From the NCBI GenBank assembly GCA_038087875.1, contig JAXLNO010005343.1, forward strand, positions 124,001 to 188,000: a stretch of DNA of 64,000 nt, given 5' to 3'. The stretch's first letter is position 1. The number at the start of each line of letters is the position of its first letter. Position numbers and translations under genes: made by a program. Source of the DNA: Malacoraja senta (Eukaryota). Of this stretch, positions 15,162 to 56,408 are shown in pieces. The notes beneath the pieces were generated by a model that saw only the letters and a list, made by a program, of their open reading frames with translations, was not told the DNA's origin and ran no database searches.

Positions 15162-15328
15162 GTATATTTTACTCTTACTATAGACAGTCAACCCGAAACT
15201 TAATTATTAATTTATAAGTTTGCTGACCCTTTATCTTTATTTTTTGTTCTCGTTACGTACAATTCTCAATTAATTTGGTCATTAGTTTAATCCTAAGCCT
15301 TATAGTTTCATTTTTCGTTTCCCGACAG

Positions 15329-15640
15329 CTGGTGACGATGGCCCGTTGACCGTAACACAAGTTCCAGAAGCTGTTTTGATGCGGGGTGACTCGGCAGTGC
15401 TTTACTGCATTTATCCAATCTTCTCAGACAACAGGCCGTACAAAGTGCATTGGTGGAGAGATGGGGATAATGGATTCCTGGATGAAAGTGCAGATAAAAG
15501 AATCCAGTTTTATTTCCTGAGAGGGGGAAGCGCTGTCTTACGGCTGGAGGACGTGACAGCGAAGGACGCCGGGCTCTATTTTTGCAGCTTGACACGTACC
15601 AAAGTTTTAAACGGGACTGGTACAAAGCTGGTAGTTTACG
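15329..15640 (+). CDS. NCR3: Gene 1 exon 2: germline-joined VJ-type Ig domain (NKp30/NCR3-like)
   Basis: Acceptor TTTCCCGACAG|, 312-nt open phase 1-1 exon. Motifs LYC, VHW, DAGLYFC and J-like NGTGTKLVV. Donor G|GTGCGT. No RSS. The symbol is a family-level assignment only. Confidence 0.9.
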
Positions 15641-21390: not shown

Positions 21391-22219
21391 AGCAGATGGT
21401 CACCGTGCCACCCTGAACACAGAGAACATCAATCCACCTTTGGAAGTGAACTACTAAGTCATGCACATCTATATAATGATGGGTCCAAAAGACAGATTGT
21501 CTATCGGCACCCTGGATTAAAAAAATATACAAAATAAAGGAATATGTATTTCTGTGTTGTACGATACCTCGTTTGTAACTGCTCAGTCACAGCGAGCGAA
21601 ATCTACCTTGGATTATACACCCACTCTCTTGAATTTAATTTAAAAGATTTCTGTCGATTTGGGATCGTAATTCACAGCAAAATTCAATTTCCATAATTAC
21701 ATTCCCAATATTCTACGAATATTGCATCGTCTGGAACTCAGCTTTGGGCACATCAGGGCCGTCATAAACGTAATGACGGCGTGGAATATTGTCCAGCCTC
21801 ACTGTATAATCACACGATGAAGAGTAAATAAGTGTTTTTATAATTTCCCATTTCTGGATATTCCACAAGATGGCCTGTTGTACCGTCACAGCTATACATC
21901 ACTACATGTTACGCTCTGCAACATGGCTACATACACACTTCGAAATGATTAGTATTGGTTGTAGCCAAATATTTGGGGGGTTCTGCACCTTAATGATGCT
22001 TTCATTGTATGAGTCATATGCATACAACTGGGATTGGACAGAAATGGAAACAGCAACTGCGCTCATGGGCAATGTTCATATCTGTTTATTTCGCGTCGAA
22101 AAGTCAAATCGATATTTTAAAAAAAGAGACAGAATGACGCTGTTGAACTGATTGCCAGTCCTATTATATAATACTGCACATATGTTAAAATTGACCACTA
22201 TTTCTTTTATTGTTTACAG

Positions 22220-22312
22220 TTTTTGTTAATCCACTTCATAATACGCTTTTTGGTTACATAAGAGCAGGATTGATACCTATCATAATCGTTACTTTCATTG
22301 TGATATATAAAG
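22220..22312 (+). CDS. NCR3: Gene 1 exon 3: stalk and transmembrane segment containing Arg (VFVNPLHNTLFGYIRAGLIPIIIVTFIVIYK)
   Basis: Pyrimidine-rich acceptor TTTACAG|, 93-nt phase 1-1 exon, strong donor G|GTAAGA. The IRAG motif parallels LRAG in the NKp30 TM. Linkage to the VJ exon across 6.6 kb is inferred. Confidence 0.8.
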
Positions 22313-25300
22313 GTAAGACTCCGAAGCTATTTGATCTCTAGATTGTTGTAAAATTAACCAATCGGAATTCAGCAATACTTTAGTTTAGAGATACAGCGCG
22401 GAAACAAGCCCTTCGGCTCACCAAGTCGGCGCCGAACAGCGATCCCCGCAACCTACACACACTAACGACAATTTATAATTATATCAAGCCAATTAACCTA
22501 CAAACCTGTAAATCTCTGGGGGGAAACCAGATATACTGGAGAAAATAATGTTTGAGAGTTTTATTGGATCGGGCACAGCGCGGTTAGCTGATCTACAAAT
22601 ACACCCGCCGCATCTCATTAGGTACATGGTTTCTCGGAAGCTGACCTTTGAGCTAGTCACCGATTTGTACATGAAGGATTGATGTCCCTTGATCCCAGAT
22701 ATGTGTTGTGGGCCAGGTTGTGGAATAAGGGGTGGAGTCTGAGAAAATGGGTCGGTGATGCAAAAACTCATTTTGCAATTGATTCTGCTTCGATTCGACA
22801 ACTTGAAGAGGACTCATATTCTATAGATTTTTAACTATTGATATCGTGATATTAGTTTCACTGCATATATGTATACAATACACAAAAGTAATCAGAAAAA
22901 ATATAACGTTTTATATGCTGCTAGATGTACTGGCTACTACGCTTTGTCTAGGCCAAGAGTGATTTTTTTTCTCTAAATTACCTCCCTATAGGGACGTGCA
23001 GAACATCGAAAGAAAGTGCCGATCAGAAAACGAAGGCAAGACGAATGAATGAATGAATTAATTAATAGACACGTGTAATACTGCAGATACATTCGAACGA
23101 CACTCGGACTTTCTCCCAATTATTACCTTCGTTTGGCTTTCAAATGTTACTGCAAGTCAAATTGCGTGGAGAAATTAGAACAAAATAAATGTCCTCGGCA
23201 AACATAACTGTTGTAGGCTCAATTATGTACCTGATGATATTTATGGAAGCACTGAGATAGGAACGAAGAATTTAGAGAAGGGATAGGCCATATGATCCTT
23301 CGAACCTGCTTGGTCGTTCACTATGATCATGGATCAACTTGCAAATTCAATGTCCTGCTCCTGTTTTCTCCCAATGTCCCTTGATCCCAGATATGTGTTT
23401 ACTGCTGTAGGTCTCTATCATGTTATAACAATATGTACTCCATTGTTAATGTATTTAATCATTTGGATTCGAGTGATTTATGATATAGAGAAATATGTAG
23501 ATTTTTCTCATCTCCTAGAGAAGAACGCGGTCCTCATCACAGTCTGAAGTGGATTTTCCCTTATTCTTTGATAATGATCCCTGGTACTGATTTTCCCATC
23601 AATCGGGAACAAACTTATTCCATCATATCTTTCCTAGACCGTGGATATTTAAGCATTCTGTGGGCTACCTTCTTAGGCTTCCATATTTTAAACTAAGTAC
23701 CCCAATTGAATCCAATGCATACGTCAGTCTTGACGCAGTCTACCAGCCTGTTGAAATCTCACTGACTCACACCATCACATGAAGATCTGTTCACAGTCAA
23801 ATATACAAAAATACACTCAACTCTCAAGGAGAGCAATCAACGATGTCTATACAACTGCATTGAGACAATGCTTCTTCTATCGTGGAATCCTCATGATATG
23901 AAGAACATTCTATAATTTGCCTCCTTCGTTGCTTTGCTGCGTTTCATAATCTATCGGGATTCAGACAATGATCGTCCTTCTTGTCATTATCACCGAAGTT
24001 GAAACCCTCGCATTTATTAAGATTGCACTCCATCCGCCGTGAGTCTGTCCTTTCTCTCAAAACGAAGCTCCTCAGCATCCACCAGAGTGCTCATCCTCTC
24101 ACGCAGTTTGATGCTGTCGATAAACAGCTATACAATAAATTTAATTCCATGATCTAATTATCAATATATATCGTGACTAGCTGAAATCCCAGCAATGTCA
24201 ATGCCTGCTACTAGGGGGAAAATACCTGTTTATTTCCACTCTTTCTTTTCTGTTGGCCAACTAATTGCTGATCACTCTCAACATGCTAACCTTTAATTTG
24301 TTCTAGTCTGTTCGGTAAGATTTTACCGAAATGCTTCAGGGCGTATAAATACACTAAAACGACGGACTCCCCCGCACATATTCTGCTTGTTACTTCCTCA
24401 AAAATACGATAGACTTGTCAAGCATGATCGCCGTTTCACAAATTGACGTTTGCTTTGAGCGGTCGCTTTCCCCCCATTCTATTTTTAACTCCCTTTGCTC
24501 AATTACTTCCAAAGCTATTTTGTTAAGTTTTACTTTGGTGGAGCCTTTTGGGTCCTCGAGATTTATTGGTGCCAGTCACCTTCATTCTACAGACATCGTT
24601 TATCCACTAGTATTGGTTTCACTTAGTTCCTCCCCTCGACTCGACAAGGTGTTTCTCACAGAGATCCAAGGCCATTTTAAATCCCCCATTCAAGCTAATC
24701 AAATGGCATATTTAATTGTCCTGCTATTTCTTTGTTTTATTAATTTATAATTCAAATTCTGTATAAATGATACCGTTCCTGACTGTAGGTGCTTAAGATT
24801 TCCATCATCTATCTTCCCTCTTCACACACACGCACACATTCACATACAGACACTTATACATATAAGCTTTTGCAGTCAGTGGTTAAATATCCGTAAGCTT
24901 CATCTTATATTCTACATCTACCCTTCTAACTACCCTTAACCTCGTAGCTGAAGCGTAAAGTTCTCATAATCCCCAACTTTGCTACGTTTTCCAGACATAT
25001 TTTATTACTGCTCTGTGGATGTCTTTGTAGACTATGTGGGCTATATTGTAGACTTCCTCGCTACTAGCGGAATAGAGAGGAACTGATATAGGCGTTTCCG
25101 TAAATACAGCACTCAGTAGTGAAACCTCCAGATTATGTTCCAAACTTCCAGATTATGTCCTTGATTTTATTAATGTAATTTTCCCATTGTTTCATACCCT
25201 GTATTTTAAGTAGTATAAATCATGGAGTATAACCAAAATAATGAGATGAAGCAAAAATAAATAAACCTGTTTTTACAAAGAAAAATATCTGATATGTCCC

Positions 25301-29064: not shown

Positions 29065-31128
29065 AGAAACATAGAAACATAGAATCATAGAAAATAAGTG
29101 CAGGAGGAGGCCATTCGGCCCTTCGAGCCAGCACCGCCATTCATTGTCATCATGGCTGATCGTCCCCAATCAATAACCCGTGCCTGCCTTCTCCCCATAC
29201 CCCTTGATTCCACCAGCCCGTAGAGCTCTATCTAACTCTCTCTTAAATCCATCCAGTGATTTGGCCTCCACTGCTCTCTGTGGCAGGGAATTCCACAAAT
29301 TCACAACTCTCTGGGTGAAAACGTTTTTTTCTCTCCTCAATCTTAAATGGCCTCCCCTTTATTCTAAGACTGTGGCCCCTGGTTCTGGACTCGTCCAACA
29401 TTGGGAATATTTTGCCTGCATCTAGCTTGTCCAGTCTTTTTTTAAATAATTTTATATGTTTTTATAAGATCCCCCTCATCCTTCTAAACTCCAGGGAATA
29501 GAAGCCTAGTCTTTTCAATCTTTCCTCATATGACAGTCCCGCCATCCCAGCGATCAATCTCGTGAACCTACGCTGCACTGCCTCAATCACAAGGATGTCC
29601 TTCCTCAAATTAGGAGACCAAAACTGTACAGAATACTCCAGATGTGGTCTTACCAGAGCCCTATACAACTGCAGAAGAACCTCTCTACACCTCTACTGAA
29701 ATCCTCTTGGTATGAAGGACAATATTCCATTAGTTTTCTTCACTGCCTGCTGTACCTGCACGCCAACTTTCAGTGACCAGTGTACAAGGACACCCAGGTC
29801 TCGCTGTACCTCCCCCTTACCTAACCTAACCCCATTGAGATAATGATCTGTCCCCTTGTTTTTGCCACAAAGTGGGTAACCTCACATTTATCTATATTAT
29901 ACTGCATCTGTCACGCATCTGCCCACACACCCAACCTGTCCAGGTCAGCCTGCAACGTCCTAACATCCTCTTCACAGTTCACACTGCCACACAGCTTTGT
30001 GTCATCTGCAAACCTGCTAGTGTTGCTCCTAATTCCCTCTTCCAAATCATTAATATATTGTAAACAGTTGCGGCCCCAACACCGAGCATTGCGGCACTCC
30101 ACTCGCCACTGCTTGCCATTCTGAAAAGGACCCGTTCACTCCGACACTTTGCTTCCTGTCTGCCAACCAATGTTCTATCCACGTCAACACCCTACCCCCA
30201 ATAGCATGTGCTCCAATTTTAGTCACCAGTCTCCCGTGCGGGACCTTATCAAAGGCGTTCTGAAAGTCTAGATACACTACATCCACTGGCTCCCCTTCAT
30301 CCATTATGCTTGTCACATGCTCAAAAAATTCCAGCATGATTTTCCTTTCATAAATCCATGCTGACTTGGACTGATCCTTCTACTGCTATACAAATGCCCC
30401 ATTATTACCGCTTTAATGATTGACTCCAGCATCTTTCCCACTACCGAAGTCTGCTTACTGGTCTGTAATTCCACGTTTTCTCTCTCGCTCCGTTCTTGAA
30501 AATTGGGATAACATTAGCTATCCTCTAATCCACAGGAACTGATCCTGAATCTATTGAACATTGGAAAATGATCACCAGTGCGTCCACTATTTCTAGAGCC
30601 ACTTCCCTGAGGATCCTTGGATGCAGACCATCGGGCCCAGGGGATTTATTATCCTTCAGTCCCATTAGCCTACCCAATACTATTTCTCACCTAATGATAA
30701 TTTCTTTCAGTTCCTCTACCCCCTTTGATCCCCTGTCCTCCAGAATTTCCGGGAGATTGTTTGTGTCTTCCTTAGTGAAGACAGATCCAAAGTACCTGTT
30801 CAACCCCTCTGCCATTTTCTTGTTCCCCATAATAATTTCGCCCGTGACTGCCTTCAAGGGATCTACATCTGATTTTGCTACTCTTTTTCCATTAACATAT
30901 CTAAAGAAGCTTTTACTGTCCTTCTTTATATTCCTGGCCAGCTTCCCCTCGTACTTTATCTTTTCAGCCCGTATTGCCCGTTTTGTTTCCTTCTGTTGTC
31001 CTATGAAAGTTTCCCAATCCTCTGGCTTCCGACTACTCTTTGCTGTGTTATACATCTTTTCTTTTAATGTTATTATATCCCTAACTTCTCTTGTCAGCCA
31101 CGGTTGCCTCCTACTCATCTTAGAATCT
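29065..31128 (-). mobile_element. CR1 LINE, 5'-truncated in ORF2
   Basis: RT fragments [14 protein letters not shown] and YLDFQNAFDKVPH (29462-30337) and tether region (30687-31118). (AGAAACAT)n tail. Confidence 0.92.
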
Positions 31129-31286
31129 GTCTTGATATGTCTGGGAGCACAGAACAGATCAGACCGTTCAGAGGAACGCCCATCCGCCTGAATTATCGTT
31201 TATCCGTATTGTGTGTATGACCGTTCGAACATGTTCTTATTTCTCCTTTCTTTTCATTTTCCTCTTTTGTTTGAATCTCATCACAG

Positions 31287-31300: not shown

Positions 31301-32276
31301 GAAAATAAATCATCTGAGTTAATGAAAAATAAATCATCTGTGTTAATGCCATAAAATCTCCCTTGGTCTCTGTATTGTTGTTTTGGTCCCTTGGAACTTG
31401 TAATATGTTGGATTACAACCCCTCTCCAGTCTCCAATGTTACAGCGATTAGACTGAAGATTAATTTACATATAAACAGAAACCAGTGCCCTTATTATGCA
31501 GGGAAACAGCTTTACAAGTATTTGCTGAGACGACTCGTTGGTGTTCTCTGTGCAGTCCTGGTCATCCTGCTATACGTAGCATGTCATTATTTTGGAAAGG
31601 TGCAGAAAGGATTCACCAAGGTATTGTCTGGAATTCATGGCTGGAGTTATCCGGTGATGCTGAATAGGTTGTGACCTCTTCCCATGAGGCATAGGAAGTT
31701 TACCTAATTCAAGTATATATAATTATAAAGGGCGTAGAGAAAGTGAATGCTTACAGTCGTTTTTGCCAGGGTAATGGATTCTTAACATGGAAGGTTACGA
31801 GGGTCCCAAGGGGCAATTTCTCTCCGAGGAAGCTTCGGAAGCGTATACATTTGCGGATTTTCAAATGATATTTGGTTAGATATTTGGATAGGAAAGATTT
31901 AGAGGGGAAATGGTCAAATGCGGAGAGATGGGTCTAGGCCAGAATGGCAATTTGCTTGACGTGGACGGGGCGGGCCGAAGGGCCTTGCTTCCATTCTGTA
32001 GAGATCTATATGATCGGTGATAAACAGCGAGTTCCAGCGTCCGCTATTATACAAACATGCAAATACAACTGTCATCTTTGCGCGATATCTCTTACTAACC
32101 AGTATCTAATTTCATAGACTGGCATACTTTTCCATTTCAACAAAGGCATGCCCACAATCTCCATTCAAATACTTAAAAACGGTCTGGCGTAAGTTTTGGG
32201 TGGGAATTCATGAAATTCCTTGACATAAAAAACAGTGATATATCTCGGGACGTTATTGAAGGTATAAACCTCATAC

Positions 32277-32556
32277 CGATTCCAGGAAATCTGTGAGTTT
32301 CAATGGTCCGAAACAGGAGGGTGACGTGAGATACGTGGCAACTATAAACCGATCGGCTATCCACTACATGCAGGAAGCTGGAAGCAAGGTATAAGCCCTC
32401 ATCGTTCCGTATTTTAGTGGTACTTATTCCAGAAGTGATTTCATGGTCATCTTTATACCAGGTAAGTTCACAGTCCTCCGGGAAAAACGGAGCAGTTGTA
32501 CAGTTTAGGGCCAGGGAAGGTGTCCATCTGTTTAATCTTCAAAGGCGTCGGTGACA
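32277..32556 (-). pseudogene. C1-set Ig constant exon downstream of the gene 2 VJ exon, with a 1-nt frameshift near its 5' end
   Basis: Acceptor TTGTTTACAG| starts VSPTPLKIKQMD. The +1 frame then reads PSLALNCTTAPFFPEDCELTWYKDDHEITSGISTTKIRNDEGLYLASSFLHVVDSRSVYSCHVSHVTL...FPGI, ending at donor G|GTATGA. C1 hallmarks are C..FFP..W and YxCxVxH. Length is 280 nt (3n+1). Confidence 0.85.
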
Positions 32557-35500
32557 CTGTAAACAATTTAAGACAAAGGAGTTAGTACCCCTATATGTTT
32601 ATTTAGAAGACAACAGAATCGCTTTCGAAATGGATAATACCATACCTTCTTGGGCGTTCCTTAAATAGTAAAGTATTTCAGCTAGGTACACAAAAATGCT
32701 AGAGAAACTCAGCGGGTGCAGCAGCATCTATGGAGCGAAGGAAATAGGCAACGTTACGGGCCGAACCCCTTCTTCAGACAGACAGTATGTCAGCTACGTT
32801 GTTGGAAATATATAGTACAGTAAACACTTGTTATAACGCAGTTGGACAGAACCACTATATCTGAGCGCTATGTGAGGCAGGTGTGACCACCTATCACTTT
32901 CCCCAACGCCTTCATTCAGTCCATGCGACGAATGGAGAAACTATCCGCATGGACGGCTGGGGAGTCTGGGTGAGTCTGGGGAGGATGGGTGAGCCAAGTC
33001 TCTGTGAAATAGAGCACAGAGTATACGGTCATCTCTCTTTGATAAAGCTACCTTGCCTCCGAGATTTCCTTGTCATGGGCGATTCTATTTTTTTTGTGCT
33101 ACACAGTTTCAGTTTATTATCACGTGTACCGAGCCACGGTGAAATGTTTTTTGTTGTGTGTTATTCAATCAGCGAAAATACTACACATGATTACGATCAA
33201 GCCGTCCACATTGTACAGATTCAATATTACCGGAGTGCGTTTAGTTCAAGATAAGGTCCAGTAAAGTCCGATAAAAAGATAGTTTGATAATCTCCTGTAT
33301 GGTAGATGGTAGGACTTGACTTCTCTCTAGTTGGTGATAGGACGATTTTGGTTACCTACAACGTTGCAACGTTGCTACACCAGACAAAGCAGAGTTCAAG
33401 GTGGTCCAATCAAACGGAAAATTGCGTTAATTAAATCGTAAATTTAGTTATTTTTGTATTATATGTAAAATATGCCTGGGAACTGTAAACCAGTCTGTGG
33501 TAGGAAGGCCACTGGAAAGGATTTAGAGGGATAAAATATGTATGCATTTGATTAAAAAGGGGCTGATCGAGGAGGGGGGGTGTGTGATTTAATAGAATGA
33601 AATGTTTAGCAACAGCCATTACTTAACACCAAATAGGACACCATCTATAAAGGCAAAGGAGCGTCATCATTTTGCTCCCGTCCACGTAACAAAAGCATTA
33701 TCTCCACATCGGTGGGTAAATCTTTGATCTCCATCCCAAACTGATCTATGCAAGTGCTCTCACCAGAGAATTTCCGGGGATGTTTCACAAGTAGTGATCG
33801 GAAATGTGCTGGAAGCAGAGCCAATCAAACCGTGAGAAATAAATTAATTAAACACCTGGTGGAAAGCAATTTAAGCGTTCCAAGAAAGAAAGGGTGCATG
33901 GGACTGACAATTTCGCTTTCCTGGTGGCGGGCACATAATTGATCTCTCAATTGCAACGCAAACTTCTTTTCCTCGGTTATTGGAATTTAATGCGGTGAAA
34001 TGTTTCGTTTACAAGGACTTGATTCCACTACTCCGGGTAAAAGGCTTTGCATATTACCGATTTATTCCGGTCATGATCAGATAGCTCCTGCGCTGCAATA
34101 GAATAAAGCCCTGGCCTGCTTCGGCTCTCCCTATAGCTCAGACCCTCGCGTGGTGGCAACATCCTCGTAAATCTGCTCTATACCCGTTCCAGCTTAACTA
34201 CATCATGCGTAGTTGCAGAGGCAGATGCGATAGGGGCATCGTAGATATTTTTAAATAGGTACATACAGGGAATGAAAGGATATGTCTCACACAGAGCGGA
34301 GATTTATTTAGTTTGGCACCATATTCCGCACTGGAATTGTGGGCCGAAGGGCCTATTCATGTTCTATGTTTAGGAGTTGTTGATTGTTTTTTGAGCAGTT
34401 ATAACTTTCGAAAATGATGGGGTGCTTTAGGTATTTGTCGTGTTCGCAATGCATGTCACGGCACTTAAACTGGACAAGGTATGGTAGCGTGACTGTGTGT
34501 ATTCAGTAGTTGTTCATGTGGGATTGAAATGTGCGTGGGAAGACCGTACTCAGTTGGGTGAAGCTTTCTGGCATATTTCCACCCAGAAATCGAGTATGAC
34601 ACTGACGTGTAATTGCCATTCGTATTGAAGCTTCTGTTCTCCCACTCGACGCTCTGCTGGGTTCCAATGAAACTCAACGTAAATTGACGGATAACGTTTT
34701 GATTAATATTCTCAATTTGCAATTTAATCATTTGATTTATGGTACTACATTTATCTCCTTTGTTTACTTATTTTGTGACTTGTTGCATTATTCTCAGATT
34801 TTCCCCCGTTTATCATGTCATGTTTTTTGTCTTCCACCCACATTAATGCGCCACCACGCACCCCACCTATTCTACCTTGCTATACGTCTGAATTTCTTGA
34901 ACAATTTTCATCATGAACTTTTGGTACTTCCGCTATAACGTTCTCGGCAGAAACTAATTTCTGTAGTCGCAGATATGTTGTGACTCGTATTTTATCATTG
35001 ATTTTCTTTGAAACTATGAATTCCTAAAATCACGGTGGAATAGTCTTACACAAGATTGCGGTTAGAATATATCACGCTCACTATTCACCAAATGTTTCTT
35101 CTAACAACACACGTTTTGTTAACATTTACTAGTTGGACTAGAAATAGCTATATAAATGGTCAAACATGGATATTCTGCAAAATAACTCAATTCGTGATCT
35201 GCCAAGAACGTTCAATCATCTGGATATCACAGGTCTCGACCTGAATGCAATGTTTTTTTGACTAAACGACTGCAGCTACAATACTCGCCAACATATGATG
35301 GTTTCCATTTCATTGACAACCATCTGCAATCTTAATCTATACTCCTTTCGCTGGATGCAGTTGAGGTCCCGCCTAGAAAATTATCTCCAGACATAAAAAT
35401 GATAACTAAATGATATGAAATTAAAGAATAATGATTGTCCAAAGATCTCATGGTCCAACAATCACGAAAAACCAAACACTTAATTGGAGCAAAACCTCTA

Positions 35501-35598
35501 GTTCAGACTGAGCAAAGGTTCGTTTATTGCTACTTTATAACTCTGTTGCACACCATATTTCTGTGTTTCTATTGGGATACGAAACATCAAGTAAGACC

Positions 35599-35922
35599 CG
35601 TGTACAATAATCCTCGTGCCATTGCCTTTGGAACTGTTTCCTTTCCCGTCTCTCACATTGCAATAATAGATCCCGGAGTCACGGAAGCCCACGTCGAACA
35701 GATGTAATTCAGCAAATCGCTTCAGGACATTGTTCATTGTCATCCTCCTGTTTGGGGTGTGAGCCAAAGCCTCTTCTTGACCCTCTTTCTTCCAATATAC
35801 ACCCAGCAGTGCTTTCTGACCGACGTTTTGCCAAGCACAGTATAAGGATACATTTTCACCTTTCATCTTCGTTACCTTATCGGGAATCTGACGCACACTG
35901 AACGAGAAGGGCCGGTCAGTTA
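35599..35922 (-). CDS. Gene 2 VJ-type Ig domain exon (open frame, splice donor disrupted)
   Basis: Acceptor TTCTGACAG|, 324 nt, motifs SLYC, VYW, DSGIYYC and GNGTRIIV. The paralogs' G|GTGAGT donor is here G|GGTCTT (3-nt loss). Confidence 0.9.
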
Positions 35923-36117
35923 CTGTCAGAATTAAAAAACAAACGTTAAACTTGTGAAATGACAAAGAACTGATAGATAAAAATCCAAATGGCTGAAATA
36001 GATCGACCGAAAGGTAAGAGTAAAGTAGGGTAGAAGTTTGAAAGTTGTACGTCTTATAATTTTCGCGGATTGACATTTTCGATACCATTTGCATTTAATA
36101 GAGAGAAATATATTAAC

Positions 36118-36172
36118 CTGTGTAACTCATGTGGAGGATCGAAAGACACAGCAGCACGGCAAACTTAAACAT
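36118..36172 (-). CDS. Gene 2 leader exon MFKFAVLLCLSILHMSYT
   Basis: ATG, 18 codons + G, donor G|GTTAAT, phase 1. Conserved in the two paralogs. Confidence 0.85.
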
Positions 36173-36282
36173 TCTGAACAAAGACAGTGAAATTCAACGA
36201 TGTTTCCTCTCTGACAGCGAGTCAAGCAGTGAAGCTTGTTGGCGACCGTCTTGCAGCAATACCGCGTGGCCCGAATGGTTCT

Positions 36283-36299
36283 GTTTCACTTTGACGTCA
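36283..36299. promoter_or_regulatory. Adjacent ISRE/IRF-like element and perfect CRE upstream of the gene 2 leader
   Basis: GTTTCACTTT (AAAGTGAAAC on minus) abutting TGACGTCA, about 110-127 nt upstream of the ATG. Function not shown. Confidence 0.4.
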
Positions 36300-36779
36300 T
36301 AGCGCTGAGAAGCACACTTAATGTCACGGAGAACACAGACGTTGCAGATATTATCTAGAGAATATGGCACATTTTGTGTATCATGGAAAGTTTTGATTTG
36401 ATGCAGCTTCGCGAATGTCACAAACCCGATTAACTCTTACAGGTGCTTTAAATGATATGTCCAATGAAAAGTAGAATATCAAAGTAACGCAACGAGAAAT
36501 ACATAAATAGAATTCGTGGAATGTGTCGAAAGGAAATGTCTCGCCAGTTAAATCTAAGCGCTTTACAGATACTGCAGCAATTAGAATGGCGAAAACTTTA
36601 CGCGTAGAACAAATAATAATATACTGTACATTATCTCTCGCTTGGGGAAAAAGACAAATAAGGCTTATGGATATGCCGGTGAATAAAGGACGGGCGCAGA
36701 GGATACGCGAAAATAAATACTTTCAAAACCTAAATGTTACTAAAGAGTTTAGAATTTAGAGAATATAGAAACAGTCCCA

Positions 36780-38520: not shown

Positions 38521-41500
38521 GCTATAGAATTTCAGTACCAGAATACACTTGTCATCTTACAGCAACATACGGCCAAGTTGAGACCACATCCGGCCTAATT
38601 TGTTACGGTTTAGCTTATTTACTCCAAAAGTGAACAATTCCATTAATTGGACTACGAGGAAGATTCGCCAGACCATCGTGAGATTGCGGGGATATCATGG
38701 TAGGAGAAATGTGGTTGGAAGTATTGCTTTCTGTAGGATTTTGGTAGGTTCACAGAGTCGTGCAGCACGAGAACAGCCCTTCGTGGCATAGACTCATAGA
38801 GCACGGGAAATGGGCCCTTCACGGGAAAATGTGCCAACAGCTTTCGTTACTAACCCATCTACATGTGACGTCATACACATGTAACCATGTATGCGTATGC
38901 CTAGTTCCCTCTGCTCTATAACTTTCCCCAGGCTTCACTGTAAATGTCCTGCCCTGGTGTGAACTCCCAAAATGCAACACCTCGCAATTGTTTGCATTAA
39001 GCTTAATTAGCTTTCCCTCAATCCATGTGCGCAACTGACCCTGCTGTAATTTTTGATGACCGTCTTCACTGATTAGTCTTTTTAGTTTAGAGGTACAGCG
39101 TGGAAACAGACTCTTTAGCTCACTCAGTCTGCACCAACCAGCAGCCCCCATATATTAACACTGTCGTGCACATACTAAGGACCATTTACATTTAGACCAA
39201 GCCAATTAACCTACAAACCTGTACTACTTTGGAGTGTGGGAGGAAACTAAGATCTCGGAGAAAATTCACGTGGTCACAGGGAGAACGTACAAATTCCATA
39301 CAGACAGCAGCCGTATTCAGATTCGAACCAGAGTCTCTGGCGCTGTAAGGCAGTAACTCTACCATTGCGCTGTCGTGCCGACCCTGTCTACGATACCACC
39401 TTCATTAATGGCATCTGCAGACTTTGTAATCATGCCTTGTTTCTTCTCATCCAAATTGTTAATATAAAACACAAACAGCAATGGACCCAGCCCCGATCCA
39501 GCAAGAGTCACAGCCTTCAATCTGAATTTTTTTAAACTACTTCCGTCCATAACTCAGATTTTCTACCCATTATGCTAGCTCATCTAGCTTTCCAGGGTAA
39601 CTTGGCATGCAGAACATGCTTCCACATAAACATTATCTTCAACCTTCTAAGTTGCTTCTTCAAAACTCTTGGTCATACGTGAGGCTATATCACCTTCGTA
39701 AACACGCCAGGTTCAATTTCACTGATCAGCTATTGCTCATAAAGCTGCATATATACCTTATCTCAGAATACTCTCCAGTAACGTATCTGCCATAGATGTC
39801 AGGCACAGATCTATAGTTCCTAGGCTTTTCCTTGCATGAAAAACATGAAGATCTGGGAACTTGGGGGCAATCAATGAAAGTGTCTTGAGTGCAATCGGTA
39901 TTACGATAGAGGTGCTCAACGTCCTAACGTGTAAAAGGTAGAGAAATCCTCCAGGCCTGATCAGATTTATCCGAGGGCACTGCGGGAAGCTAGAGAACAA
40001 ATTGCAGGTGACCTGGCTGAGATATATGAGTCATCATTAACTATGGGTGAGGTGTCGGAAGATTGCAGGGTGACAATTGTGTACGTAGGAACTGGAGCTG
40101 CTGATTTAAAGCAAAGATGGACACAAAATGCTGAAGTAATTCAGCGGGGCAGACAGCATCTCTAGAGAGAAGGAAAGAGTGACGTTTTGGGTCGAGACCC
40201 TTCTTCAGATGGTTTGGAGTGGAGGGCTCTGAATAGTGGTGTGCTTCCAGGATCGGTGCTGGGCCTATTGTTGTTTGTGGCTTACTGTACATCAACGATT
40301 TGGATGAGAACATACAAGGCCAGATTAGTAAGATTGCAGACGACTTAATTGGGTAATATGTAGATAGCGAAAATGGTTATCAAAGGTTACAGCAGGATTT
40401 GTTCAGTTGGGCAAGTAGGCTGGTCAATGGTTAATGAGTTTAATGCAGATAAGTGTGAGGTTTTGTATTTTGGGGAAGTCAAATGTGGGCAGGACTTGTA
40501 TAGTAAACGGCAAAACGCCACGGGAGTATGCTGGTACAGTACATGGTTCCTTGAGAGTGGTGTCACAGGTAGACAATGTGGTTAAGAAGGCTTTCGGCAC
40601 ACAGGCCTTCATCAGTCAGGGTAATGAGTATAGAATTTGGGATGTTGTTACAGCTGTATCAGGAGCTGGGGAGCCGTTTTCCACATGATAGTGGGGATAT
40701 GAAATGAACTGCCAGATGAGATTATTGAGGCTGAAACTACAACAACATTTAAAGGACATTTGAACAGGACATGGATGGTTTTGGAGACCAAACGCCGGCA
40801 GATGGTACTAATGCAGATGGGACACCGTGATCGGCATGATGCATTCCAACCCCTCTGCCAACATATCTCTGTGTAAAGAGCTTGCCCCATACATCAATAT
40901 TAAACTTCCCCCACTCAGTTTATATCTATGCCCTCTAAAGTTGGACATTCCCCACCCTAAGATAACATTTGTGACAGACTACCCTATCTATGCCCGTCAT
41001 ATTTTAATTTTTTTTAAATCTATTGTCCACTCAGCCTCTGACGTTCCAGAGAAAATAATCCAGGTTTATCCAACCTCTCCATGTAGCTGAAACTCCCTAA
41101 TCCAGGCAACGTTCTGGTAAACCTCCTCTGCATCCTCTCCGATGCATCCACATCATTCCTGTAATGGGGCAACCGGAACTGTACGCAAAACTAACTGCAG
41201 CTAATCAATCCAAAGTAACAAATCACCATGTCTCCCACAAATTAAAATCTTCTCGATTAGCATTCAATTACGGAATTTCTCGAAATGGTTTGATAGAATC
41301 CATGCAGAAAAATATCACTGCCCCATCCACATAAATCATCTTCATCATTACATTAAATTCAATCAGACGTGAGCTCCAATAGATTCCCGATGGCTGACAT
41401 GAACCTCAACAGCTTATGATTTCCTTGATTACTTCTTTCCCTCAGAAAGTAAAGCGCAACATTCGCTACTCTTCAGTCATCCGGGAACTCGATTGTGGCT

Positions 41501-42355
41501 TAAGTGGATACGAAAGTCCTCATCAAAGGCGCTGCAATCGCAACTCCTCCTTTGCCTCCCTCAATAAAAAGGGGCAGATTCCACCGGACCCTCGGATATT
41601 ATGCACCTTAAGGCTTTTGAAGTGAACCAACACCTCTTTCTTCTTCTCAAAGTGCACCAGCATATTGTCCCCTAATTTACAATAGATCATCCAATCATTC
41701 CTCGCCTATACAACCTCATTCCTCCTCCTTACTGGCGTATACTGGTCCTGATTTCTGATCAGTTGGCCTTTAATCGACCACCATGTCCAATGTAAACGTA
41801 CCCAACAACATCTGCTCACCATTTCATCTCCCCCAATATCTAGATGGATCCTTATTCGCAGCTATCTTAAAACTTATGGATTTATGATCAGGGATCCCAA
41901 AATACACTTCTACTGAAACATCAAGCTCATTTCCCAAAGCAAGGTGTAACATGGTCCGGCGTCGAGTTGCAATATCCACAGACTATTTCAAGAAACTACT
42001 TTCGATACACCAAGCTTGCTCTTTTTAGATTTTCTGCATGAAGGCAGTCACAGTCAATAATGGGGATTTGTCACCGATACCAGAAACTTGATGTTTTGAC
42101 ATCTTTCTCTAATCTCCCCACATATCTGTTTCTCTCTCATTCACCGGCTATAGGGAGGCCGATGGTATAATCCCATTAGAGTTGTTACACATCTCTTTAT
42201 ATTGTGTTCCACTCCCATTGCCTCAGTAGATGAGTATGTGAGTGCCGCTGACATTTTCCTGATTAGTAATGCAATTCCTGTATCTCTTGTACCCCTATAA
42301 TGCCTATAATGTATGAAACATCAAAACTCATAAATTTTGAGTTAGCAGTCATCGA

Positions 42356-42672
42356 TCAAGTCAAGTCAAGTCAAGAGAGTTCATTGTCATGTCCCAGATA
42401 GGACAATGAAATTCTTGCTTGCTGCAGCACAACAGAATATTGTAAGCAAAAATACAGAACAGTTCAGTTCAATATACACATAAATAAGCAGATAAAGTGC
42501 AATAGGCTGTTACAGTTCAGAGTCTGTTTGTTGACGAGTTTCATAGCCTGATGGCTGTGGGGAAGTAGCTGTTCCTGATCCTGGATGTAACAGATCTCAG
42601 ACTCCTGTACCTTCTGCCCGGTGGTAGCGGAGAGATGAGTGCGTGGCCAGGATGGTGTGGGTCCTTGATGAT
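42356..42672 (-). mobile_element. Rex1/Babar-type LINE 3' fragment; duplicate at about 51808-52122
   Basis: Minus strand encodes IIKDPHHPGHALISPLPPGRRYRSLRSVTSRIRNSYFP. (CTTGA)n tail. Confidence 0.7.
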
Positions 42673-42949
42673 CATCCACTTTACCTGTAATGCTCCTTGG
42701 AATAAACACATCTCAACCGATCTGTTTCAACGTGTTATTTAGCCTCACTCAAAACACACTTCAGAAAATCCATCTTAACATTTTTTTATTAACCTTTTCC
42801 TGTCTCACCTCCATTTCAGACTAATGGGTCATAACCCCGATCTTGCCACTGGGCCATAACTGGGTCATAACACCTATCTCGCGTCTATCACATAGTTCCA
42901 TGGGCTGACCTGCTGCTTCCACACACCGCCCGCCCCCCCCCCTCCGTGC

Positions 42950-43400
42950 TCAGTCCACGCCACCGCTCGTGCATATATCCTCCCAAGTAACTGCAAGGAC
43001 ACCGCCTCTACCTCCCAGTTCAATTGCAGCCCATTCGTTTTATATAGGTCCTATTTGTCCTGTAAGAATACCCAATGACCCATATATTTTATGCCAGGGC
43101 CTTAGCCACGTAGTAACTTGGATTATTCTGCTATTCCTTTCGATACCGTTTTGTATTCCCGAGATAGCAATACAGGAGGTCTTGTTTTTTCACCGAATAC
43201 CGAACTCCCTAAATTCTCTTTGCAGACCCTCGTGTCCCTTTCTACATATGACATTGATGCTAATATGGACCACGAGATATGGCTTCTCACCCTCCCGTCT
43301 CACAATATTCCGTGTTTGCCACGTGACATCCGTAACATCAGACAACAGAGTGAGGACAGAGCATTCTTGAGTATCTCTTGCTGCCAGTGAAACCATTGAC
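42950..43400 (-). mobile_element. Decayed CR1 ORF1 (esterase-like) fragment; duplicate at about 52400-52855
   Basis: VVHISINVICRKGHEGLQREFREFG resembles CR1 ORF1 VVVHIGTNDIGRK...LxxEFRELG. Confidence 0.65.
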
Positions 43401-43621
43401 TGGAGGCGACTGTCACTATTTCCTTTGAACTAATTTAACAGTGACGTTCAGAAGACTTAGATAAACAAGATGTTTTCATACTTTTTATTTATTCTCTGAG
43501 TCACAAATATTTGATCAGAAATACGCTGAATGAGTTAACATTGAGCTTTTCTCTGCCTGGCGGAACTAATTTCAGACGTTCAAAGATAGCTCCCGTCTAT
43601 CACGTAGTCATCAACTGCTGT

Positions 43622-43869
43622 CAGGGCCGGATTTAGATGAAGAGAGGTCCTAGGCTGTTCCACTTGTGAGGCTGCTCCCAATCCCCCACCCCCACGACTA
43701 GAGGAAGATGGTACACCAGATTGACACCGATTTGCAGCCGAGCATGGCCAGGGACGGATTTTGATGAAGAGAGGCTGTTCCACTTGTGAGGCCCCTCCCA
43801 ATCTCCCACCCCACGACTAGAGGAAGATGGTCCACCAGATTGACACCGATTTGCAGCCGAGCGTGGCCA
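43622..43869 (+). repeat. Two tandem copies of a ~125-bp unit starting CAGGGCCGGATT (hAT-like terminus)
   Basis: 43622-43748 and 43749-43869 align directly. Duplicated again at about 53077-53325. Confidence 0.75.
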
Positions 43870-45111
43870 ATTAGATAAGGGGCTGGAAAGCTGCGGTTTT
43901 ATTTATTTATTTATTTATTTATTGCCAGTGTCGCGTTATCGGCTTAAAACACTATTATTCTGAAATGGAGGGCAAGGAAAATTACTGAAGGGTTGTTTAG
44001 AGACTACAGTGCGTTGTGACAGGATATGTAAAAAAGGCCTATGACAGTGTCAAAAATATTATACACCTTGCAGTGCTCTCACTTAATTTTTTCTCTGTTG
44101 TCAGGGCAACCTTGGCAGCTTTTTAAGTTGCCAAATGACACTTTAGGTTGTCATTTAAGACGGCTTGCATGACGCGTGCGATAATGTGCTCGGACCACGT
44201 CCGTAGTTTACCAGTCAGAATTATGCTCAATGAAGCATTCACATATTATTTCTGCTTCAAATAAAGTCACTAAACATATTCACCAATTAAGACAAGACGT
44301 GATATATACCACAATGACATGCAGCAAAATTATAATACAGTATCTCAACTCTTTATACACGTTGCAATGAATGCAATCTATATACTTTAAAATTGTGTGT
44401 GTGTGTGTGTGTGTGTGTGGGGGGGGGGGGGTGTATTGTCATATTTTTTGCCTTTGATTCGTTACTCCGCCAAAACCAGACTAAAACACGCCGAGATTTT
44501 TACCATTTCGCTAGCGATTTCACTTTACATTCGCTCATCCACTCCTCATTAAATTTAGTCATTTTTCTGTACACATTTTTAATAAAATCCTCCCCCCCCC
44601 CCTCCCCCCCCCCCCCACCCCCCCCCACTCACTCATTTTTTCGCCTCACGCTGGCTACCTTCTCTTCGCGTGCCCCGCGCGACCATAACGGCTGCTGCCG
44701 CCCGGCTCTACTCCACCATCCCCCCCCCCCCCGGCCCGGCTCTGTCACGCTGGTGGAAGCCAAAGATCGGCTGTTCCCTCGCTGCTTTTCGCCGTCCTCG
44801 CTGGCGGCCCGCACGCTTGCACTGTCCGAAAATCCCGCGCGTCAACGGCCTGTCGCCCCGCAGGCGCATTGAGGGACGTACGCAGCGTCTCGACGGGCGT
44901 ACGCAGCGTCTTGACGTCGTACGCAGCGTCCTGACGTCGTACGCCTGGCCCGCAGGCTCACTCGGGATCACGCCCGCCGCCCACTCCACCCCCCCCTCCC
45001 CGTACTCGGGGTCTGAAGCGCCGATGATGCAAGGCCATGGAGCTGAGGTTCACTCTGAGGCCGACGGCTGCTGGGCGGCCCTACCCCTCTCCTCCCTCCC
45101 TTCTTAATTTA

Positions 45112-45160
45112 ATATCAATGGGGGTGGTTAGTGTGTGTTGTGTGTTGTGTGTGTGTGTGT

Positions 45161-45205
<45 letters not shown>
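45112..45205. repeat. (GT)n microsatellite
   Basis: Visible directly. The corresponding position in copy B is the N gap. Confidence 0.95.
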
Positions 45206-45206
<1 letters not shown>

Positions 45207-45340
45207 CGCCTCAGGCCAGCCCTCCCTCGCAACCGCGCGTTGCGGGAACAGACCGAACGGGTCTGCACTTGGTCTAGTTTCTATTATTTCTTTCCACTTC
45301 CAAACAAAAATGTGGTTGGATTATTCAGCGTATGATCAAC

Positions 45341-45400
45341 CTCGGTGAGACCAAGCGCAGGCTTGGCGATCGCTTCGCACAACACCTCCACTCAGTTCGA
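45341..45400 (+). mobile_element. Penelope-like GIY-YIG fragment
   Basis: Encodes LGETKRRLGDRFAQHLHSVR. Confidence 0.65.
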
Positions 45401-46386
45401 AGTTGAGAGCAGTTAATACTCACTTTGTTGCATCCAGTTATCATTACAATTTGAAGAATAGCCGGGCAACCAATATGAGCTCGTAATCGAATTAGTTGTG
45501 AAGCTTTCATCAAAATACCTCATAGCATTAACCACACGACGTTCGTCAACCTGGAACATGAATTTGAAGATAAATATGAACAATGCAGTTATTGCTTTAC
45601 ATTTACTAACTATAATATAATCTTGCCCGTGAATCTGTGAGCATGTGGCCCTTTTAGCATCTAAATATAAGCCTTCCTAAAATGAGGAAAAATTGTACTC
45701 CGGATGTCCACTTCCGTTCAAGTAAGGTCTGGTGATTAGATTATATACAACCGGTAATGAAGACCTGTTAGTTTAATCGTTTCAGACGGAGTATAAAAAT
45801 AAGGACATTTGAATGAGTGAATGATTACGCTGCCACACTTCTATTACTTTCGTGCGGTCTAATTATTGCCTGACCTGTTCCGGATTGAGCCACGCCTTTA
45901 GTTTCCATTCTTCAGTCCCTGCAAGTAAGCGCGTAAATGTTCTGTGATTGCACATAAAGGAGACCATTCTAGCAGATTTAGAGTCGTATGATTGACGCAT
46001 TCTTTCCTTTCTGATCAGAAAATTCATTGTCGATTTCTTTCAACTCATCTCACCTTTAGGCGTGTTTCCTCTGCGGATTTTGTATGCAGGTACAGCTTTT
46101 TTTACAAAACATAGTTTCATTTTGTGTTCATGAGTAGCTCACCCCAATTACGAGTATGTTTAATTAACCCTACGCATAAAAATGATAACTAAATGATATG
46201 AAATTAAAGAATAATGATTGTCCAAAGATCTCATGGTCCAACAATCACGAAAAAAACAATTACTTAAATCTTTAGAGCAAACCTTCTAGTACAGACTGAG
46301 AAAGGGTCCGTTATTGCTACTTTATAACTCTGTAGCACACCATATTTGTTTTTGTATTGTGATTCGAAACATCATTATAGACTCAC

Positions 46387-46709
46387 CGTGTACAATAATC
46401 CTCGTGCCATTGCTTTTGGAACTCTTCCTTCTCCGCCTCTCACACTGCAATAATAGATCCCGGAGTCACGGAAGCTCACGTCCAACAGATGTAATTCGGC
46501 AGATCCCTTCAGGACATTGTTCATTTTCATGCTCCTGTATGCGGTGGGATTCAAAGTCTCTCTCTTGACCGTCTCTCTTCCAGTATACATCCACCAGTGC
46601 ATTCTGACCAAAGATTGGGAAAGTACAGTACAGGATACATTTTCACCTGTCACCTTCGTTACCTTATCGGGAATCTGACGCACCCTGAACGAGGAGGCCC
46701 CGTCAGTAA
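46387..46709 (-). pseudogene. VJ exon copy 3; identical to copy 4 apart from three 1-nt indels (net -1)
   Basis: 323 nt versus 324 nt. The indels fall in a G run, a TC tract and a T run. Splice sites are intact (CAG| and G|GTGAGT). May be sequencing error. Confidence 0.8.
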
Positions 46710-46878
46710 CTGTCAGAATTAAAAACAAACGTTAAACATGTGAAATGACATTGAATGGATCGATAAAATTCCAAATGACTGAGATAGATAGACCGAAAAG
46801 TAAGAGTTGTACATCTTATACTTTTCGCGGATTGACTTTTTCCTGATATTTTCATTTAATAGAGAGAAATATATTAAC

Positions 46879-46933
46879 CTGTGTAACTCATGTGCAGGAT
46901 CGAGAGACACAGCAGCACGGCAAACATAAACAT
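46879..46933 (-). CDS. Leader exon copy 3, MFMFAVLLCLSILHMSYT
   Basis: ATG, 55 nt, donor G|GTTAAT. Confidence 0.8.
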
Positions 46934-49900
46934 TCTGAACAAAGGGGGTGAAATTCAACGATGTTTCCTCTTTGACAGCGAGTCAAGCAGTGAAGCTTGT
47001 TGGCGACCGTCTTGCAGCAATACCGCGTGGCCCGATACTGTACATTATCTCTGCCTTGGGAAAAGGACAAATGAGGCTTATGGATATGCCGTTGAATAAA
47101 GGACGGGCGCAGGGATAAAGGAAAATATAATACTTTCAAAACCTAAATGTTACTAAAGAATTTAGAATCTAGAGAATATAGAAACAGTCCCAACGGAGCA
47201 TCTAATCCACACCAACCATCGATCACCCCTTCACACCAGTTCCATGTTATCCCACTTTCTCACCCACTACCTGCATGTTAAGGGCAAATTACAGCAGCCA
47301 ACAAAGCAGCAAGTCTTTGGGATGTAGGAAGAAATCACACGTAGAAAATCCATGTAGTTACAAGGAGAAATTGCAAATTCCACACAGTCAGCACCGAACG
47401 AGGTTAGGATCGAACGAGGATCTCCGCCAATGTGAGGCAGCATCTCGACCAGTTACCACCATTGAAGAGGTTTATGCGCCCAAGCATTGATGAATTACAA
47501 TCAGCTGGTCTTCTATGTTGTTTAAGGAGGAACTGCAGATGCTGGAAAATCGAAGGTAGACAAAAGTGCTGGAGAAACTCAGCGCGTGCAGCAGCGTCTA
47601 TGGAGCGAAGGAAATAGGCAACGTTTCGGGCCGCAACGCTTCTTCAGTCTTCAATGTTCACAGATTTGTAGAATTTGAAATATATATATTATATATTATC
47701 CTCCGTGGTTCTATAGATTCAGTAATTATTCCAGGATAATTCTAAGTAGCAAATGTGAAACTTCCCTTTGGTTTCCAATGTGTTTTGGTTAGTTTATGTG
47801 GGGTTGAGGGGGGGGGGTTTGGGGAAACATTGTTTCGGTCACTTACTTCGACGGAGATGCGATTTGCTCCTTGTCGCATCTCCCCCGCCCCTCTCCCCTC
47901 CTTTTGCGGCGTAACATCCTGGAGTGGTGCGCCTTTCCTGGGTACCGGGCACGGAGCTTCAGCCGCGAGCGCGGCGCGGAACCTGGGATCCTTTACCGAC
48001 GATCGCCAGAAGAAGAGCTCCGACCATATAACCATATAACCTTTACAGCACGGAAACAGGCCATCTCGGCCTTCAAGTCCTTGCCGAACACTTTTTTCCC
48101 CCTTCTTTCTTCTTTCTTCCCCCTAGTTCCATCTACCTGCACTCAGACCATAACCCTCCATTCCTTTGATTTGATTTGATTTCTTGTCATTTGAACCTCA
48201 AAGAGGCTCAAAACGAAACTCCGTTTCCACAGCCATACAAAACAAAACAATTCCTACTCGACACACAAACAATTCAATTTACAGAAAAACATCCATCGCA
48301 GCGAATCTCCTCCTCACTGTGATGGAAGGCAAAGTCATTTCTCTCCCTTCTACCATTTTTCTCTCCGGTGTTGAAGCCCCAGGCGGGCAATGTTAAGTCC
48401 CACGGCCGTTGAGGCAGCGCCGGGCGGTATACAGCTTCGCTCCGGGCCCAAAGTCACAAGTTGGAGCCCCGGCGGCCGCTGGAATTTCCCGCGGCTTTAA
48501 CATTAAAGCCGACCGGAGCGATTTACGGCCCCGCTCCGGGTCGTTCCAACCCCGCGACTCGAGCTGGAGAAGTTGCGTTGCGGGAGCTCCGGAAAGCGGT
48601 CTCTCACCCGGACCCGCGAGCTCCCGATGTCCCAGTCCACGGGTCTGCAGCTGCAGCTGCAGCTCCGGAGTGAGCAGCAACGAGTCACCACCGCTCCCCG
48701 CGCTCCGAGGCCGGCCAGCCCCACGATGGTAAGTCCGCAGCTCCACGGTCGTCCCGGTCGGAGGCCGTATTCAGATTCGAACCAGAGTCTCTGGCGCTGT
48801 ATAGGCAGTAACTCTACCATTGCGCTGTCGTGCCGACCCTGTCTACGATACCACCTTCATTAATGGCATCTGCAGACTTTGTAATCATGCCTTGTTTCTT
48901 CTCATCCAAATTGTTAATATAAAACACAAACAGCAATGGACCCAGCCCCGATCCAGCAAGAGTCACAGCCTTCAATCTGAATTTTTTTAAACTACTTCCG
49001 TCCATAACTCAGATTTTCTACCCATTATGCTAGCTCATCTAGCTTTCCAGGGTAACTTGGCATGCAGAACATGCTTCCACATAAACATTATCTTCAACCT
49101 TCTAAGTTGCTTCTTCAAAACTCTTGGTCATACGTGAGGCTATATCACCTTCGTAAACACGCCAGGTTCAATTTCACTGATCAGCTATTGCTCATAAAGC
49201 TGCATATATACCTTATCTCAGAATACTCTCCAGTAACGTATCTGCCATAGATGTCAGGCACAGATCTATAGTTCCTAGGCTTTTCCTTGCATGAAAAACA
49301 TGAAGATCTGGGAACTTGGGGCAATCAATGAAAGTGTCTTGAGTGCAATCGGTATTACGATAGAGGTGCTCAACGTCCTAACGTGTAAAAGGTAGAGAAA
49401 TCCTCCAGGCCTGATCAGATTTATCCGAGGGCACTGCGGGAAGCTAGAGAACAAATTGCAGGTGACCTGGCTGAGATATATGAGTCATCATTAACTATGG
49501 TGAGGTGTCGGAAGATTGCAGGGTGACAATTGTGTACGTAGGAACTGGAGCTGCTGATTTAAAGCAAAGATGGACACAAAATGCTGAAGTAATTCAGCGG
49601 GGCAGACAGCATCTCTAGAGAGAAGGAAAGAGTGACGTTTGGGTCGAGACCCTTCTTCAGATGGTTTGGAGTGGAGGGCTCTGAATAGTGGTGTGCTTCC
49701 AGGATCGGTGCTGGGCCTATTGTTGTTTGTGGCTTACTGTACATCAACGATTTGGATGAGAACATACAAGGCCAGATTAGTAAGATTGCAGACGACTTAA
49801 TTGGGTAATATTGTAGATAGCGAAAATGGTTATCAAAGGTTACAGCAGGATTTTGTTCAGTTGGGCAAGTAGGCTGGTCAATGGTTAATGAGTTTAATGC

Positions 49901-54558: not shown

Positions 54559-54693
54559 NNNNNNNNNNNNNNNNNNNNNNNNNNNNNNNNNNNNNNNNNN
54601 NNNNNNNNNNNNNNNNNNNNNNNNNNNNNNNNNNNNNNNNNNNNNNNNNNNNNNNNNNNNNNNNNNNNNNNNNNNNNNNNNNNNNNNNNNNNN
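54559..54693. other. Assembly gap (135 N)
   Basis: N run replacing the (GT)n region seen in copy A. Confidence 1.
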
Positions 54694-55859: not shown

Positions 55860-56183
55860 CGTGTACAATAATCCTCGTGCCATTGCTTTTGGAACTCTTT
55901 CCTTCTCCGCCTCTCACACTGCAATAATAGATCCCGGAGTCACGGAAGCTCACGTCCAACAGATGTAATTCGGCAGATCCCTTCAGGACATTGTTCATTT
56001 TCATGCTCCTGTATGCGGTGGGATTCAAAGTCTCTTCTTGACCGTCTCTCTTCCAGTATACATCCACCAGTGCATTCTGACCAAAGATTGGGAAAGTACA
56101 GTACAGGGATACATTTTCACCTGTCACCTTCGTTACCTTATCGGGAATCTGACGCACCCTGAACGAGGAGGCCCCGTCAGTAA
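55860..56183 (-). CDS. VJ-type Ig domain exon copy 4, intact
   Basis: 324-nt open phase 1-1 exon, motifs SLYC, VYW, DSGIYYC and SNGTRIIV. Acceptor TTCTGACAG|, donor G|GTGAGT. Confidence 0.9.
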
Positions 56184-56353
56184 CTGTCAGAATTAAAAAC
56201 AAACGTTAAACATGTGAAATGACATTGAATGGATCGATAAAATTCCAAATGACTGAGATAGATAGACCGAAAAGTAAGAGTTGTACATCTTATACTTTTC
56301 GCGGATTGACTTTTTCCCTGATATTTTCATTTAATAGAGAGAAATATATTAAC

Positions 56354-56408
56354 CTGTGTAACTCATGTGCAGGATCGAGAGACACAGCAGCACGGCAAAC
56401 ATAAACAT
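56354..56408 (-). CDS. Leader exon copy 4, MFMFAVLLCLSILHMSYT
   Basis: ATG, 55 nt, donor G|GTTAAT. Joins the VJ exon in frame. Confidence 0.85.

Follow-up and report, generated by a model that had tools for sequence, protein, structure and literature searches.

A non-rearranging V-C1 locus was analysed in a 64,000-nucleotide stretch of the Malacoraja senta genome (assembly GCA_038087875.1, contig JAXLNO010005343.1, positions 124,001 to 188,000; hereafter the window, numbered from its first base). The locus, referred to as the 36k copy, lies on the minus strand between 36172 and 32277 and consists of a split leader, an immunoglobulin-type V exon with a built-in J motif and a C1-set exon. Judged by its sequence, the copy belongs to a non-rearranging V-C1 receptor family of sharks, rays and chimaeras, predicted but undescribed. 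It is not a complete gene, and the explanation that we consider most probable is that of a decayed, 3'-truncated member of this family of cartilaginous-fish surface receptors. Decay is proposed because of a deletion in the V splice donor, a branch in the V-domain tree three times longer than that of an intact paralog, a ratio of non-synonymous to synonymous substitution rates (dN/dS) of 1.64, the presence of a single C1 exon, the lack of any transmembrane or tail exon, and an intron and downstream region filled with repeats.

The exon anatomy of the original prediction, i.e. a leader, a V exon with the J motif GNGTRIIV and a C1 exon, all in phase 1 on the minus strand, was confirmed by direct reading, by Pfam and by profiles. 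The leader exon (36118–36172) starts with an ATG at 36172, encodes a hydrophobic segment of 18 codons plus one base (phase 1) and ends at a GT donor at 36117-36116. Its product is 94% identical to the leaders of both cassettes found upstream (46k and 56k, see below). An intron of 194 bases separates the leader from the V exon (35599–35922, minus strand; acceptor AG at 35924-35923), which is open over all of its 324 bases and encodes two conserved cysteines, the conserved tryptophan and DSGIYYC, a form of the DSGxYYC motif. This exon scored 35.8 bits against Pfam V-set, where the cut-off is 26, and 151 bits against a profile of the V domains of the family. The GNGTRIIV motif represents the J-like last strand of antigen-receptor V domains and is contained in the same exon as the V, behind the split leader; the junctions of leader, V and C1 are in phase 1 throughout. 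Heptamer-spacer-nonamer recombination signals were not found near any V exon, in line with their proposed absence from the exon ends. A single weak match, at 18708 and unrelated to any V exon, was obtained in the whole 64-kb window, which is at chance level (0.8 expected by shuffling).

The C1-set exon (32277–32556, minus strand) is located 3 kb downstream of the V exon, between an acceptor AG at 32558-32557 and a donor GT at 32276-32275, the sequence reading GTATGA after the exon. As assembled it comprises 280 bases, while sequencing reads give 282 bases, equivalent to 94 codons with phase 1 at both ends. In a comparison of C1-set with C2-set and I-set models, the piece following the frameshift in the assembled exon was assigned by Pfam to C1-set with 47.3 bits (cut-off 21), against 22.3 bits for C2-set_2, and I-set was not listed. 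A profile built from the C1 domains of the family matched this piece with 122 bits (E = 1e-36), the identity of the exon to the C1 domains of relatives being 43–58%, and the C1 hallmarks FFP after the first cysteine, TW and YSCHVSH are all seen. The assignment of the second domain as a true C1-set domain holds, both by sequence and by the structural comparison described below.

Two lesions had been proposed for this copy, a lost V donor and one additional nucleotide in the C1 exon. The former stands, as a three-base deletion that is also present in an independent contig, whereas the latter does not. The first 16 codons of the assembled C1 exon are in one frame and the remainder in another, and comparison with reads and relatives reveals that the change, at 32519–32524, is a deletion of two bases, with a C for T at 32524, rather than an insertion of one base. 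Four public runs were used (X1, X2, X4 and X25), two of them from one organism, probably the species of the window, and two from two other organisms; the runs cover introns as well as exons and contain no V-to-C1 joint, and consequently behave as DNA. Searches of the public runs for this stretch returned no RNA run that contained it. The T at 32524 and the two extra bases are found in all contigs covering the site, in each of the four runs. With the two bases restored the exon is open throughout its 94 codons, and its first cysteine lies as far from the exon start as in the relatives. The two bases are thus missing from C1 in the assembly alone, owing to either a rare allele or an error in the consensus, and the assembled C1 frameshift should be read with the warning that it is without read support.

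The closest single-V proteins to the V exon, retrieved by an exhaustive HMMER search, are predicted proteins of 260–450 residues from manta ray, horn shark, catshark, smooth-hound, white shark, basking shark and elephant fish, with 44–51% identity. These relatives share one plan, comprising a leader, a V domain with the same motifs, a C1 domain starting VPPTPLKI and a transmembrane segment followed by a tail in which three or four tyrosine motifs occur, several of them fitting the inhibitory consensus (e.g. LTYASL and VEYSEI). A profile search returned 50 members with E < 1e-47, all of them from cartilaginous fish, followed by salmonid T-cell receptor (TCR)-beta-like proteins at about 1e-12, and one C1 of the matching type was present in 74 of 87 fetched proteins bearing this type of V. 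Several V-only relatives are annotated isoforms that omit the C1 exon and keep the same V and tail, which fits the phase symmetry of the 282-base exon. The relatives examined in this respect came from Mobula birostris, Heterodontus francisci and Pristis pectinata. Annotated C1-skipping isoforms occur in several species, and in one sawfish (P. pectinata) gene one isoform is named NCR3-like and the other SIRP-like. The copy is a member of a family already predicted in public gene sets, where the automatic names conflict: SIRP-alpha-like, tapasin-related-like, NCR3 ligand 1-like (B7H6-like), CD276 homolog, lambda light chain-like and MHC-like (major histocompatibility complex). Among the RefSeq models, examples are XP_072135199 (Mobula birostris), XP_067905922 (Heterodontus francisci) and XP_038661939 (Scyliorhinus canicula), and the labels of the examples include 'tyrosine-protein phosphatase non-receptor type substrate 1-like', 'tapasin-related protein-like' and 'NCR3 ligand 1-like'.

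A maximum-likelihood tree built from V domains placed the V exons of the 36k and 56k cassettes as sisters (100/97), grouped with ray V-C1 proteins (100/98). This grouping is nested among the 23 members of a clade of V-C1 proteins whose tails bear tyrosine motifs (100/100). The branch leading to 36k has three times the length of that leading to 56k. Together with the profile matches, which are all from cartilaginous fish, these groupings bear out the proposal of a poorly described chondrichthyan VJ-C1 family. No paper describing the family was found in the searchable literature, although the shark NCR3 paper (Kinlein et al. 2021) may cover part of the family. Within the family, two Mobula birostris genes were observed that differ by 15% in leader, V and C1 and are identical over about 136 residues of membrane segment and tail, suggesting gene conversion or a very recent partial duplication. 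The idea that manta V-C1 cassettes share membrane exons was dropped, as the first membrane-exon residues differ (E versus D), indicating separate exons.

The ectodomain of the closest relative was modelled by AlphaFold with a pLDDT (predicted local distance difference test) of 88. Foldseek aligned this model over both domains with antibody light chains, and a VIA-align search of representative chains returned, likewise over both domains, B7-H6, butyrophilins (BTN2A1/3A1) and PD-L2 at Z 15.8–16.4, in addition to nectin-type pairs; the overall Z was 15–17. The C1 half of the model superimposes on the membrane-proximal domains of MHC (HLA) class II with a root-mean-square deviation of 1.2–1.6 Å and Z 14.4–14.8. 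The predicted fold corresponds to a V-C1 surface protein. As regards function, the intact relatives do not look like antigen receptors; they resemble surface receptors of the SIRP type or the B7/butyrophilin type that carry inhibitory tyrosine motifs.

The donor of the 36k V exon is destroyed. In a three-copy alignment, the bases TGA are lost at 35594–35599 (minus strand), where both paralogs read CACG at the exon end followed by GTGAGT, and the sole GT remaining at the end of the 36k V exon would put the junction in phase 2, so that translation would meet a stop in the exon that follows. Consequently, the 36k V exon is not joinable in frame to the C1 exon. The deletion is present in an independent contig from run X1 that covers 35442–35672 with one mismatch and no gap; such a near-identical contig across the donor argues against an assembly slip as the source of the three-base deletion. 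Other contigs that map to the 36k V exon have an intact donor. They differ from it at 10 of 170 bases, carry the indels of the paralogs and, going by these differences, look like paralogs rather than alleles, albeit identical to neither copy in the window.

Neither a transmembrane nor a cytoplasmic exon could be identified, either beyond the C1 exon or elsewhere on the minus strand of the window. The searches comprised tblastn with 14 relatives, relaxed tblastn, a tail profile run against the six reading frames and hydropathy scans at two thresholds. The best match of the tail profile over all six frames (E = 1.7) was inspected and dismissed. A hydrophobic stretch with a lysine at 31490-31416 was rejected as a membrane exon, having no usable acceptor and sitting among repeats. 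The designation as a VJ-C1 gene is therefore accurate for the exons and fails for a complete gene, there being no membrane or tail exon and one C1 exon for three leader-V cassettes. With the V donor lost and no membrane or tail exon detected, the 36k copy is most likely unable to yield a working receptor.

Five V exons of this kind are present in the window, three on the minus strand with leaders (36k, 46k and 56k) and two on the plus strand, and the window holds one C1 exon. The upstream cassette at 55860–56408 (minus strand; leader 56408-56354, V approximately 56183-55860) is intact, with the donor GTGAGT and a V profile score of 163 bits. The middle cassette (46387–46933, minus strand) is a 99% copy of it, in which three one-base indels break the V frame. 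These two cassettes each occupy one unit of a 9.46 kb tandem repeat (39310-48767 and 48764-58240) whose units are 98.9–99.3% identical, and an N gap at 54559-54693 falls within this repeat; the repeat may be a very recent duplication, or it may represent two haplotypes assembled in tandem. The unit containing the 36k cassette shares only 1.7 kb with the 46k and 56k units, at 86–91% identity. The 36k and 56k V exons are distinguished by 34 non-synonymous and 6 synonymous changes, and the resulting dN/dS of 1.64 gives no sign of purifying selection, a value that fits decay or diversifying change and cannot separate these.

The history that we favour for the locus starts from an intact family member, in which a split leader would have been followed by one V domain whose last strand is J-like and by one C1 domain, then by a transmembrane segment and a cytoplasmic tail bearing three or four inhibitory-type tyrosine motifs. 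Such a protein would, by analogy with SIRP-alpha, bind its ligand via the tip of the V domain and recruit phosphatases via the tail. The three leader-V cassettes that now precede one C1 exon would stem from tandem duplication. The one closest to C1 (36k) has lost its splice donor, and no membrane or tail exons would have been left before the convergent NKp30-like gene. Several observations weigh against decay. The 36k V frame is open and every canonical residue is retained, transmembrane and tail exons are short and fast-evolving and can escape similarity searches, and the assembly nearby is doubtful, with a 99% identical 9.46 kb repeat across an N gap. In addition, the C1 exon is open in both samples of the organism that is probably the window's species and in the two other organisms, and for this reason the exon may still be used, e.g. 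by the intact 56k cassette.

One alternative, which we regard as doubtful, is that the locus is still working in the population. The 56k cassette, or a 36k allele with a good donor, would be spliced to C1, the product would be secreted or carry membrane exons missed by the searches, and the assembled lesions would be a rare haplotype or consensus errors. The C1 exon, open and free of the frameshift in four runs, has a good acceptor and a good donor, and the intact 56k cassette has a donor that follows the consensus; however, a transcript from the 56k promoter must bypass two more V acceptors across 23 kb. Contigs with an intact donor and 91–94% likeness to the 36k V exon are present in X1, X2 and X4, but the differences and paralog indels in them point to paralogs, the donor deletion recurs in an independent contig, and four methods yielded no membrane exon. 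It appears very unlikely that the V cassettes and the C1 exon were never one gene, the C1 exon being the orphan of another, deleted member and the leader-V units solitary duplicates. That the duplicated units hold only leader and V, that the 36k unit has just 1.7 kb in common with the others and that a broken plus-strand V exon at 11.5–11.9 kb points to a cluster that sheds exons would all suit an orphan C1. Against this, the order, strand, phase and 3 kb spacing of the 36k V and C1 exons agree with the gene plan of the family, and both exons are closest to the same ray proteins (Mobula; V about 50%, C1 54–58% identity). A decayed and truncated family member remains our preferred explanation.

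Wider readings were considered as well. Non-rearranging VJ-C1 genes are the presumed raw material of antibodies and T-cell receptors, and it is conceivable, though unlikely, that the family represents an ancestral long form of NKp30 with a skippable 282-base C1 cassette, NKp30, SIRP-type receptors and antigen receptors deriving from one VJ-C1 plan. If true, bony vertebrates owe their V-only NKp30 to fixation of the C1-skipped form, and the VJ-C1 gene plan was retained intact only in cartilaginous fish. In a bolder local variant, the three leader-V cassettes may be alternative first exons of one C1 exon, a germline choice of V without recombination. What the locus itself contributes is more limited. 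The large V-C1 family of sharks, rays and chimaeras merits a description and a name, as it goes under five or more contradictory labels in current gene sets. The 36k copy, broken and tail-less, adds little to that description, and its use is as a record of cluster turnover by tandem leader-V duplication, loss of 3' exons and fast V change.

As to synteny with MHC class I, MHC class II or proteasome genes, the window contains nothing but immunoglobulin-type exons and repeats. The proposed NCR3-like neighbour was recovered as an NKp30-like gene on the plus strand, convergent with the V-C1 locus. It has an open V exon at 15340-15642 (region 15286-15696) with the J motif GTGTKLVV and a further exon at 22195-22341; a hydrophobic exon of the gene has an arginine in the membrane segment, i.e. 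is of the activating type. A further relic, a broken V exon of the same family as the V-C1 cassettes, lies at 11542-11852 on the plus strand; it is interrupted by in-frame stops, changes frame and has GNGTGTTLV as its J motif. The intron between V and C1 and the stretch downstream to the 3' end of the NKp30-like gene are occupied by repeats and reverse-transcriptase fragments. Very high-copy repeats were observed in the intron at 32608-32879, and also at 33150-33290 and 34100-34375, with summed contig depth into the millions in runs of three species; a large number of the contigs break off or loop back at 32737-32779. Rfam gave nothing in 32000-36500. The receptor cluster is flanked and interrupted by dispersed repeat copies, 96% and 77% identical, and by reverse-transcriptase-like open frames, the regions concerned being 6788-10043 and 58465-61717, 1875-3751 and 29069-30934, and 30568-31191.

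To our knowledge, V domains of the B7 family are without a J-like motif. By fold, B7-H6, butyrophilins and light chains are comparable to the V-C1 family, all having a two-domain V-C1 ectodomain, at about 20% identity. Light chains and TCR chains rearrange, in contrast to the V-C1 family, and the separate V and J segments with recombination signals that characterize a rearranging immunoglobulin light chain or TCR gene are absent from the locus.

NKp30, SIRP, tapasin, UrIg and UrIg2 have been discussed as non-rearranging VJ or VJ-C1 kin of the antigen-receptor ancestor (PMC12227049, PMC10751288). The bearing on an ancestor predating RAG (recombination-activating genes) that had been proposed for the window was not upheld, as the locus adds nothing beyond the arguments published for NKp30, SIRP and UrIg (PMC12227049, PMC10751288). 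UrIg and UrIg2, non-rearranging antibody-like genes of sharks, are like the window copy in having a single-exon VJ, a split leader, C1-type domains and no recombination signals. However, UrIg has three C1-type domains and is secreted and UrIg2 has nine or more C domains (PMC12227049), and both are without the tyrosine-motif tail of the V-C1 family, while the window has a single C1 exon. In a profile search of solved structures, UrIg2 came out among the best matches to the C1 piece; this ranking is dominated by multi-domain proteins and does not resolve the nearest family.

NKp30 (NCR3) shares with the window copy a germline-joined V with a GxGT motif, and an NKp30-like gene adjoins the locus; the C1-skipped isoforms of the relatives equally correspond to an NKp30-like protein of V domain and anchor. 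Conversely, NKp30 lacks a C domain and uses a charged residue in its membrane segment for signalling, whereas the V exon in the window has a C1 exon after it, and the V resembles that of NKp30 only weakly, the exon scoring 24 bits and the family profile 39 bits. SIRP-alpha and other SIRPs are similar to the family in that a non-rearranging V with a J-like strand is followed by C1-set, and the intact relatives carry a tail with four tyrosines. They have two C1 domains, though, as opposed to one in the family and one C1 exon in the window, and the match of SIRP-gamma to the C1 piece (35 bits) reflects likeness only at the level of the domain class. Compared with the intact members of its own family, which possess a transmembrane segment and a tyrosine-motif tail, the window copy is without either, has lost its V donor and presents a single C1 exon with two extra V cassettes. 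What it has in common with the RefSeq models of the family is the leader, the V exon with its J motif, the C1 exon and the phase-1 junctions, at 45–54% identity in V and 43–58% in C1.

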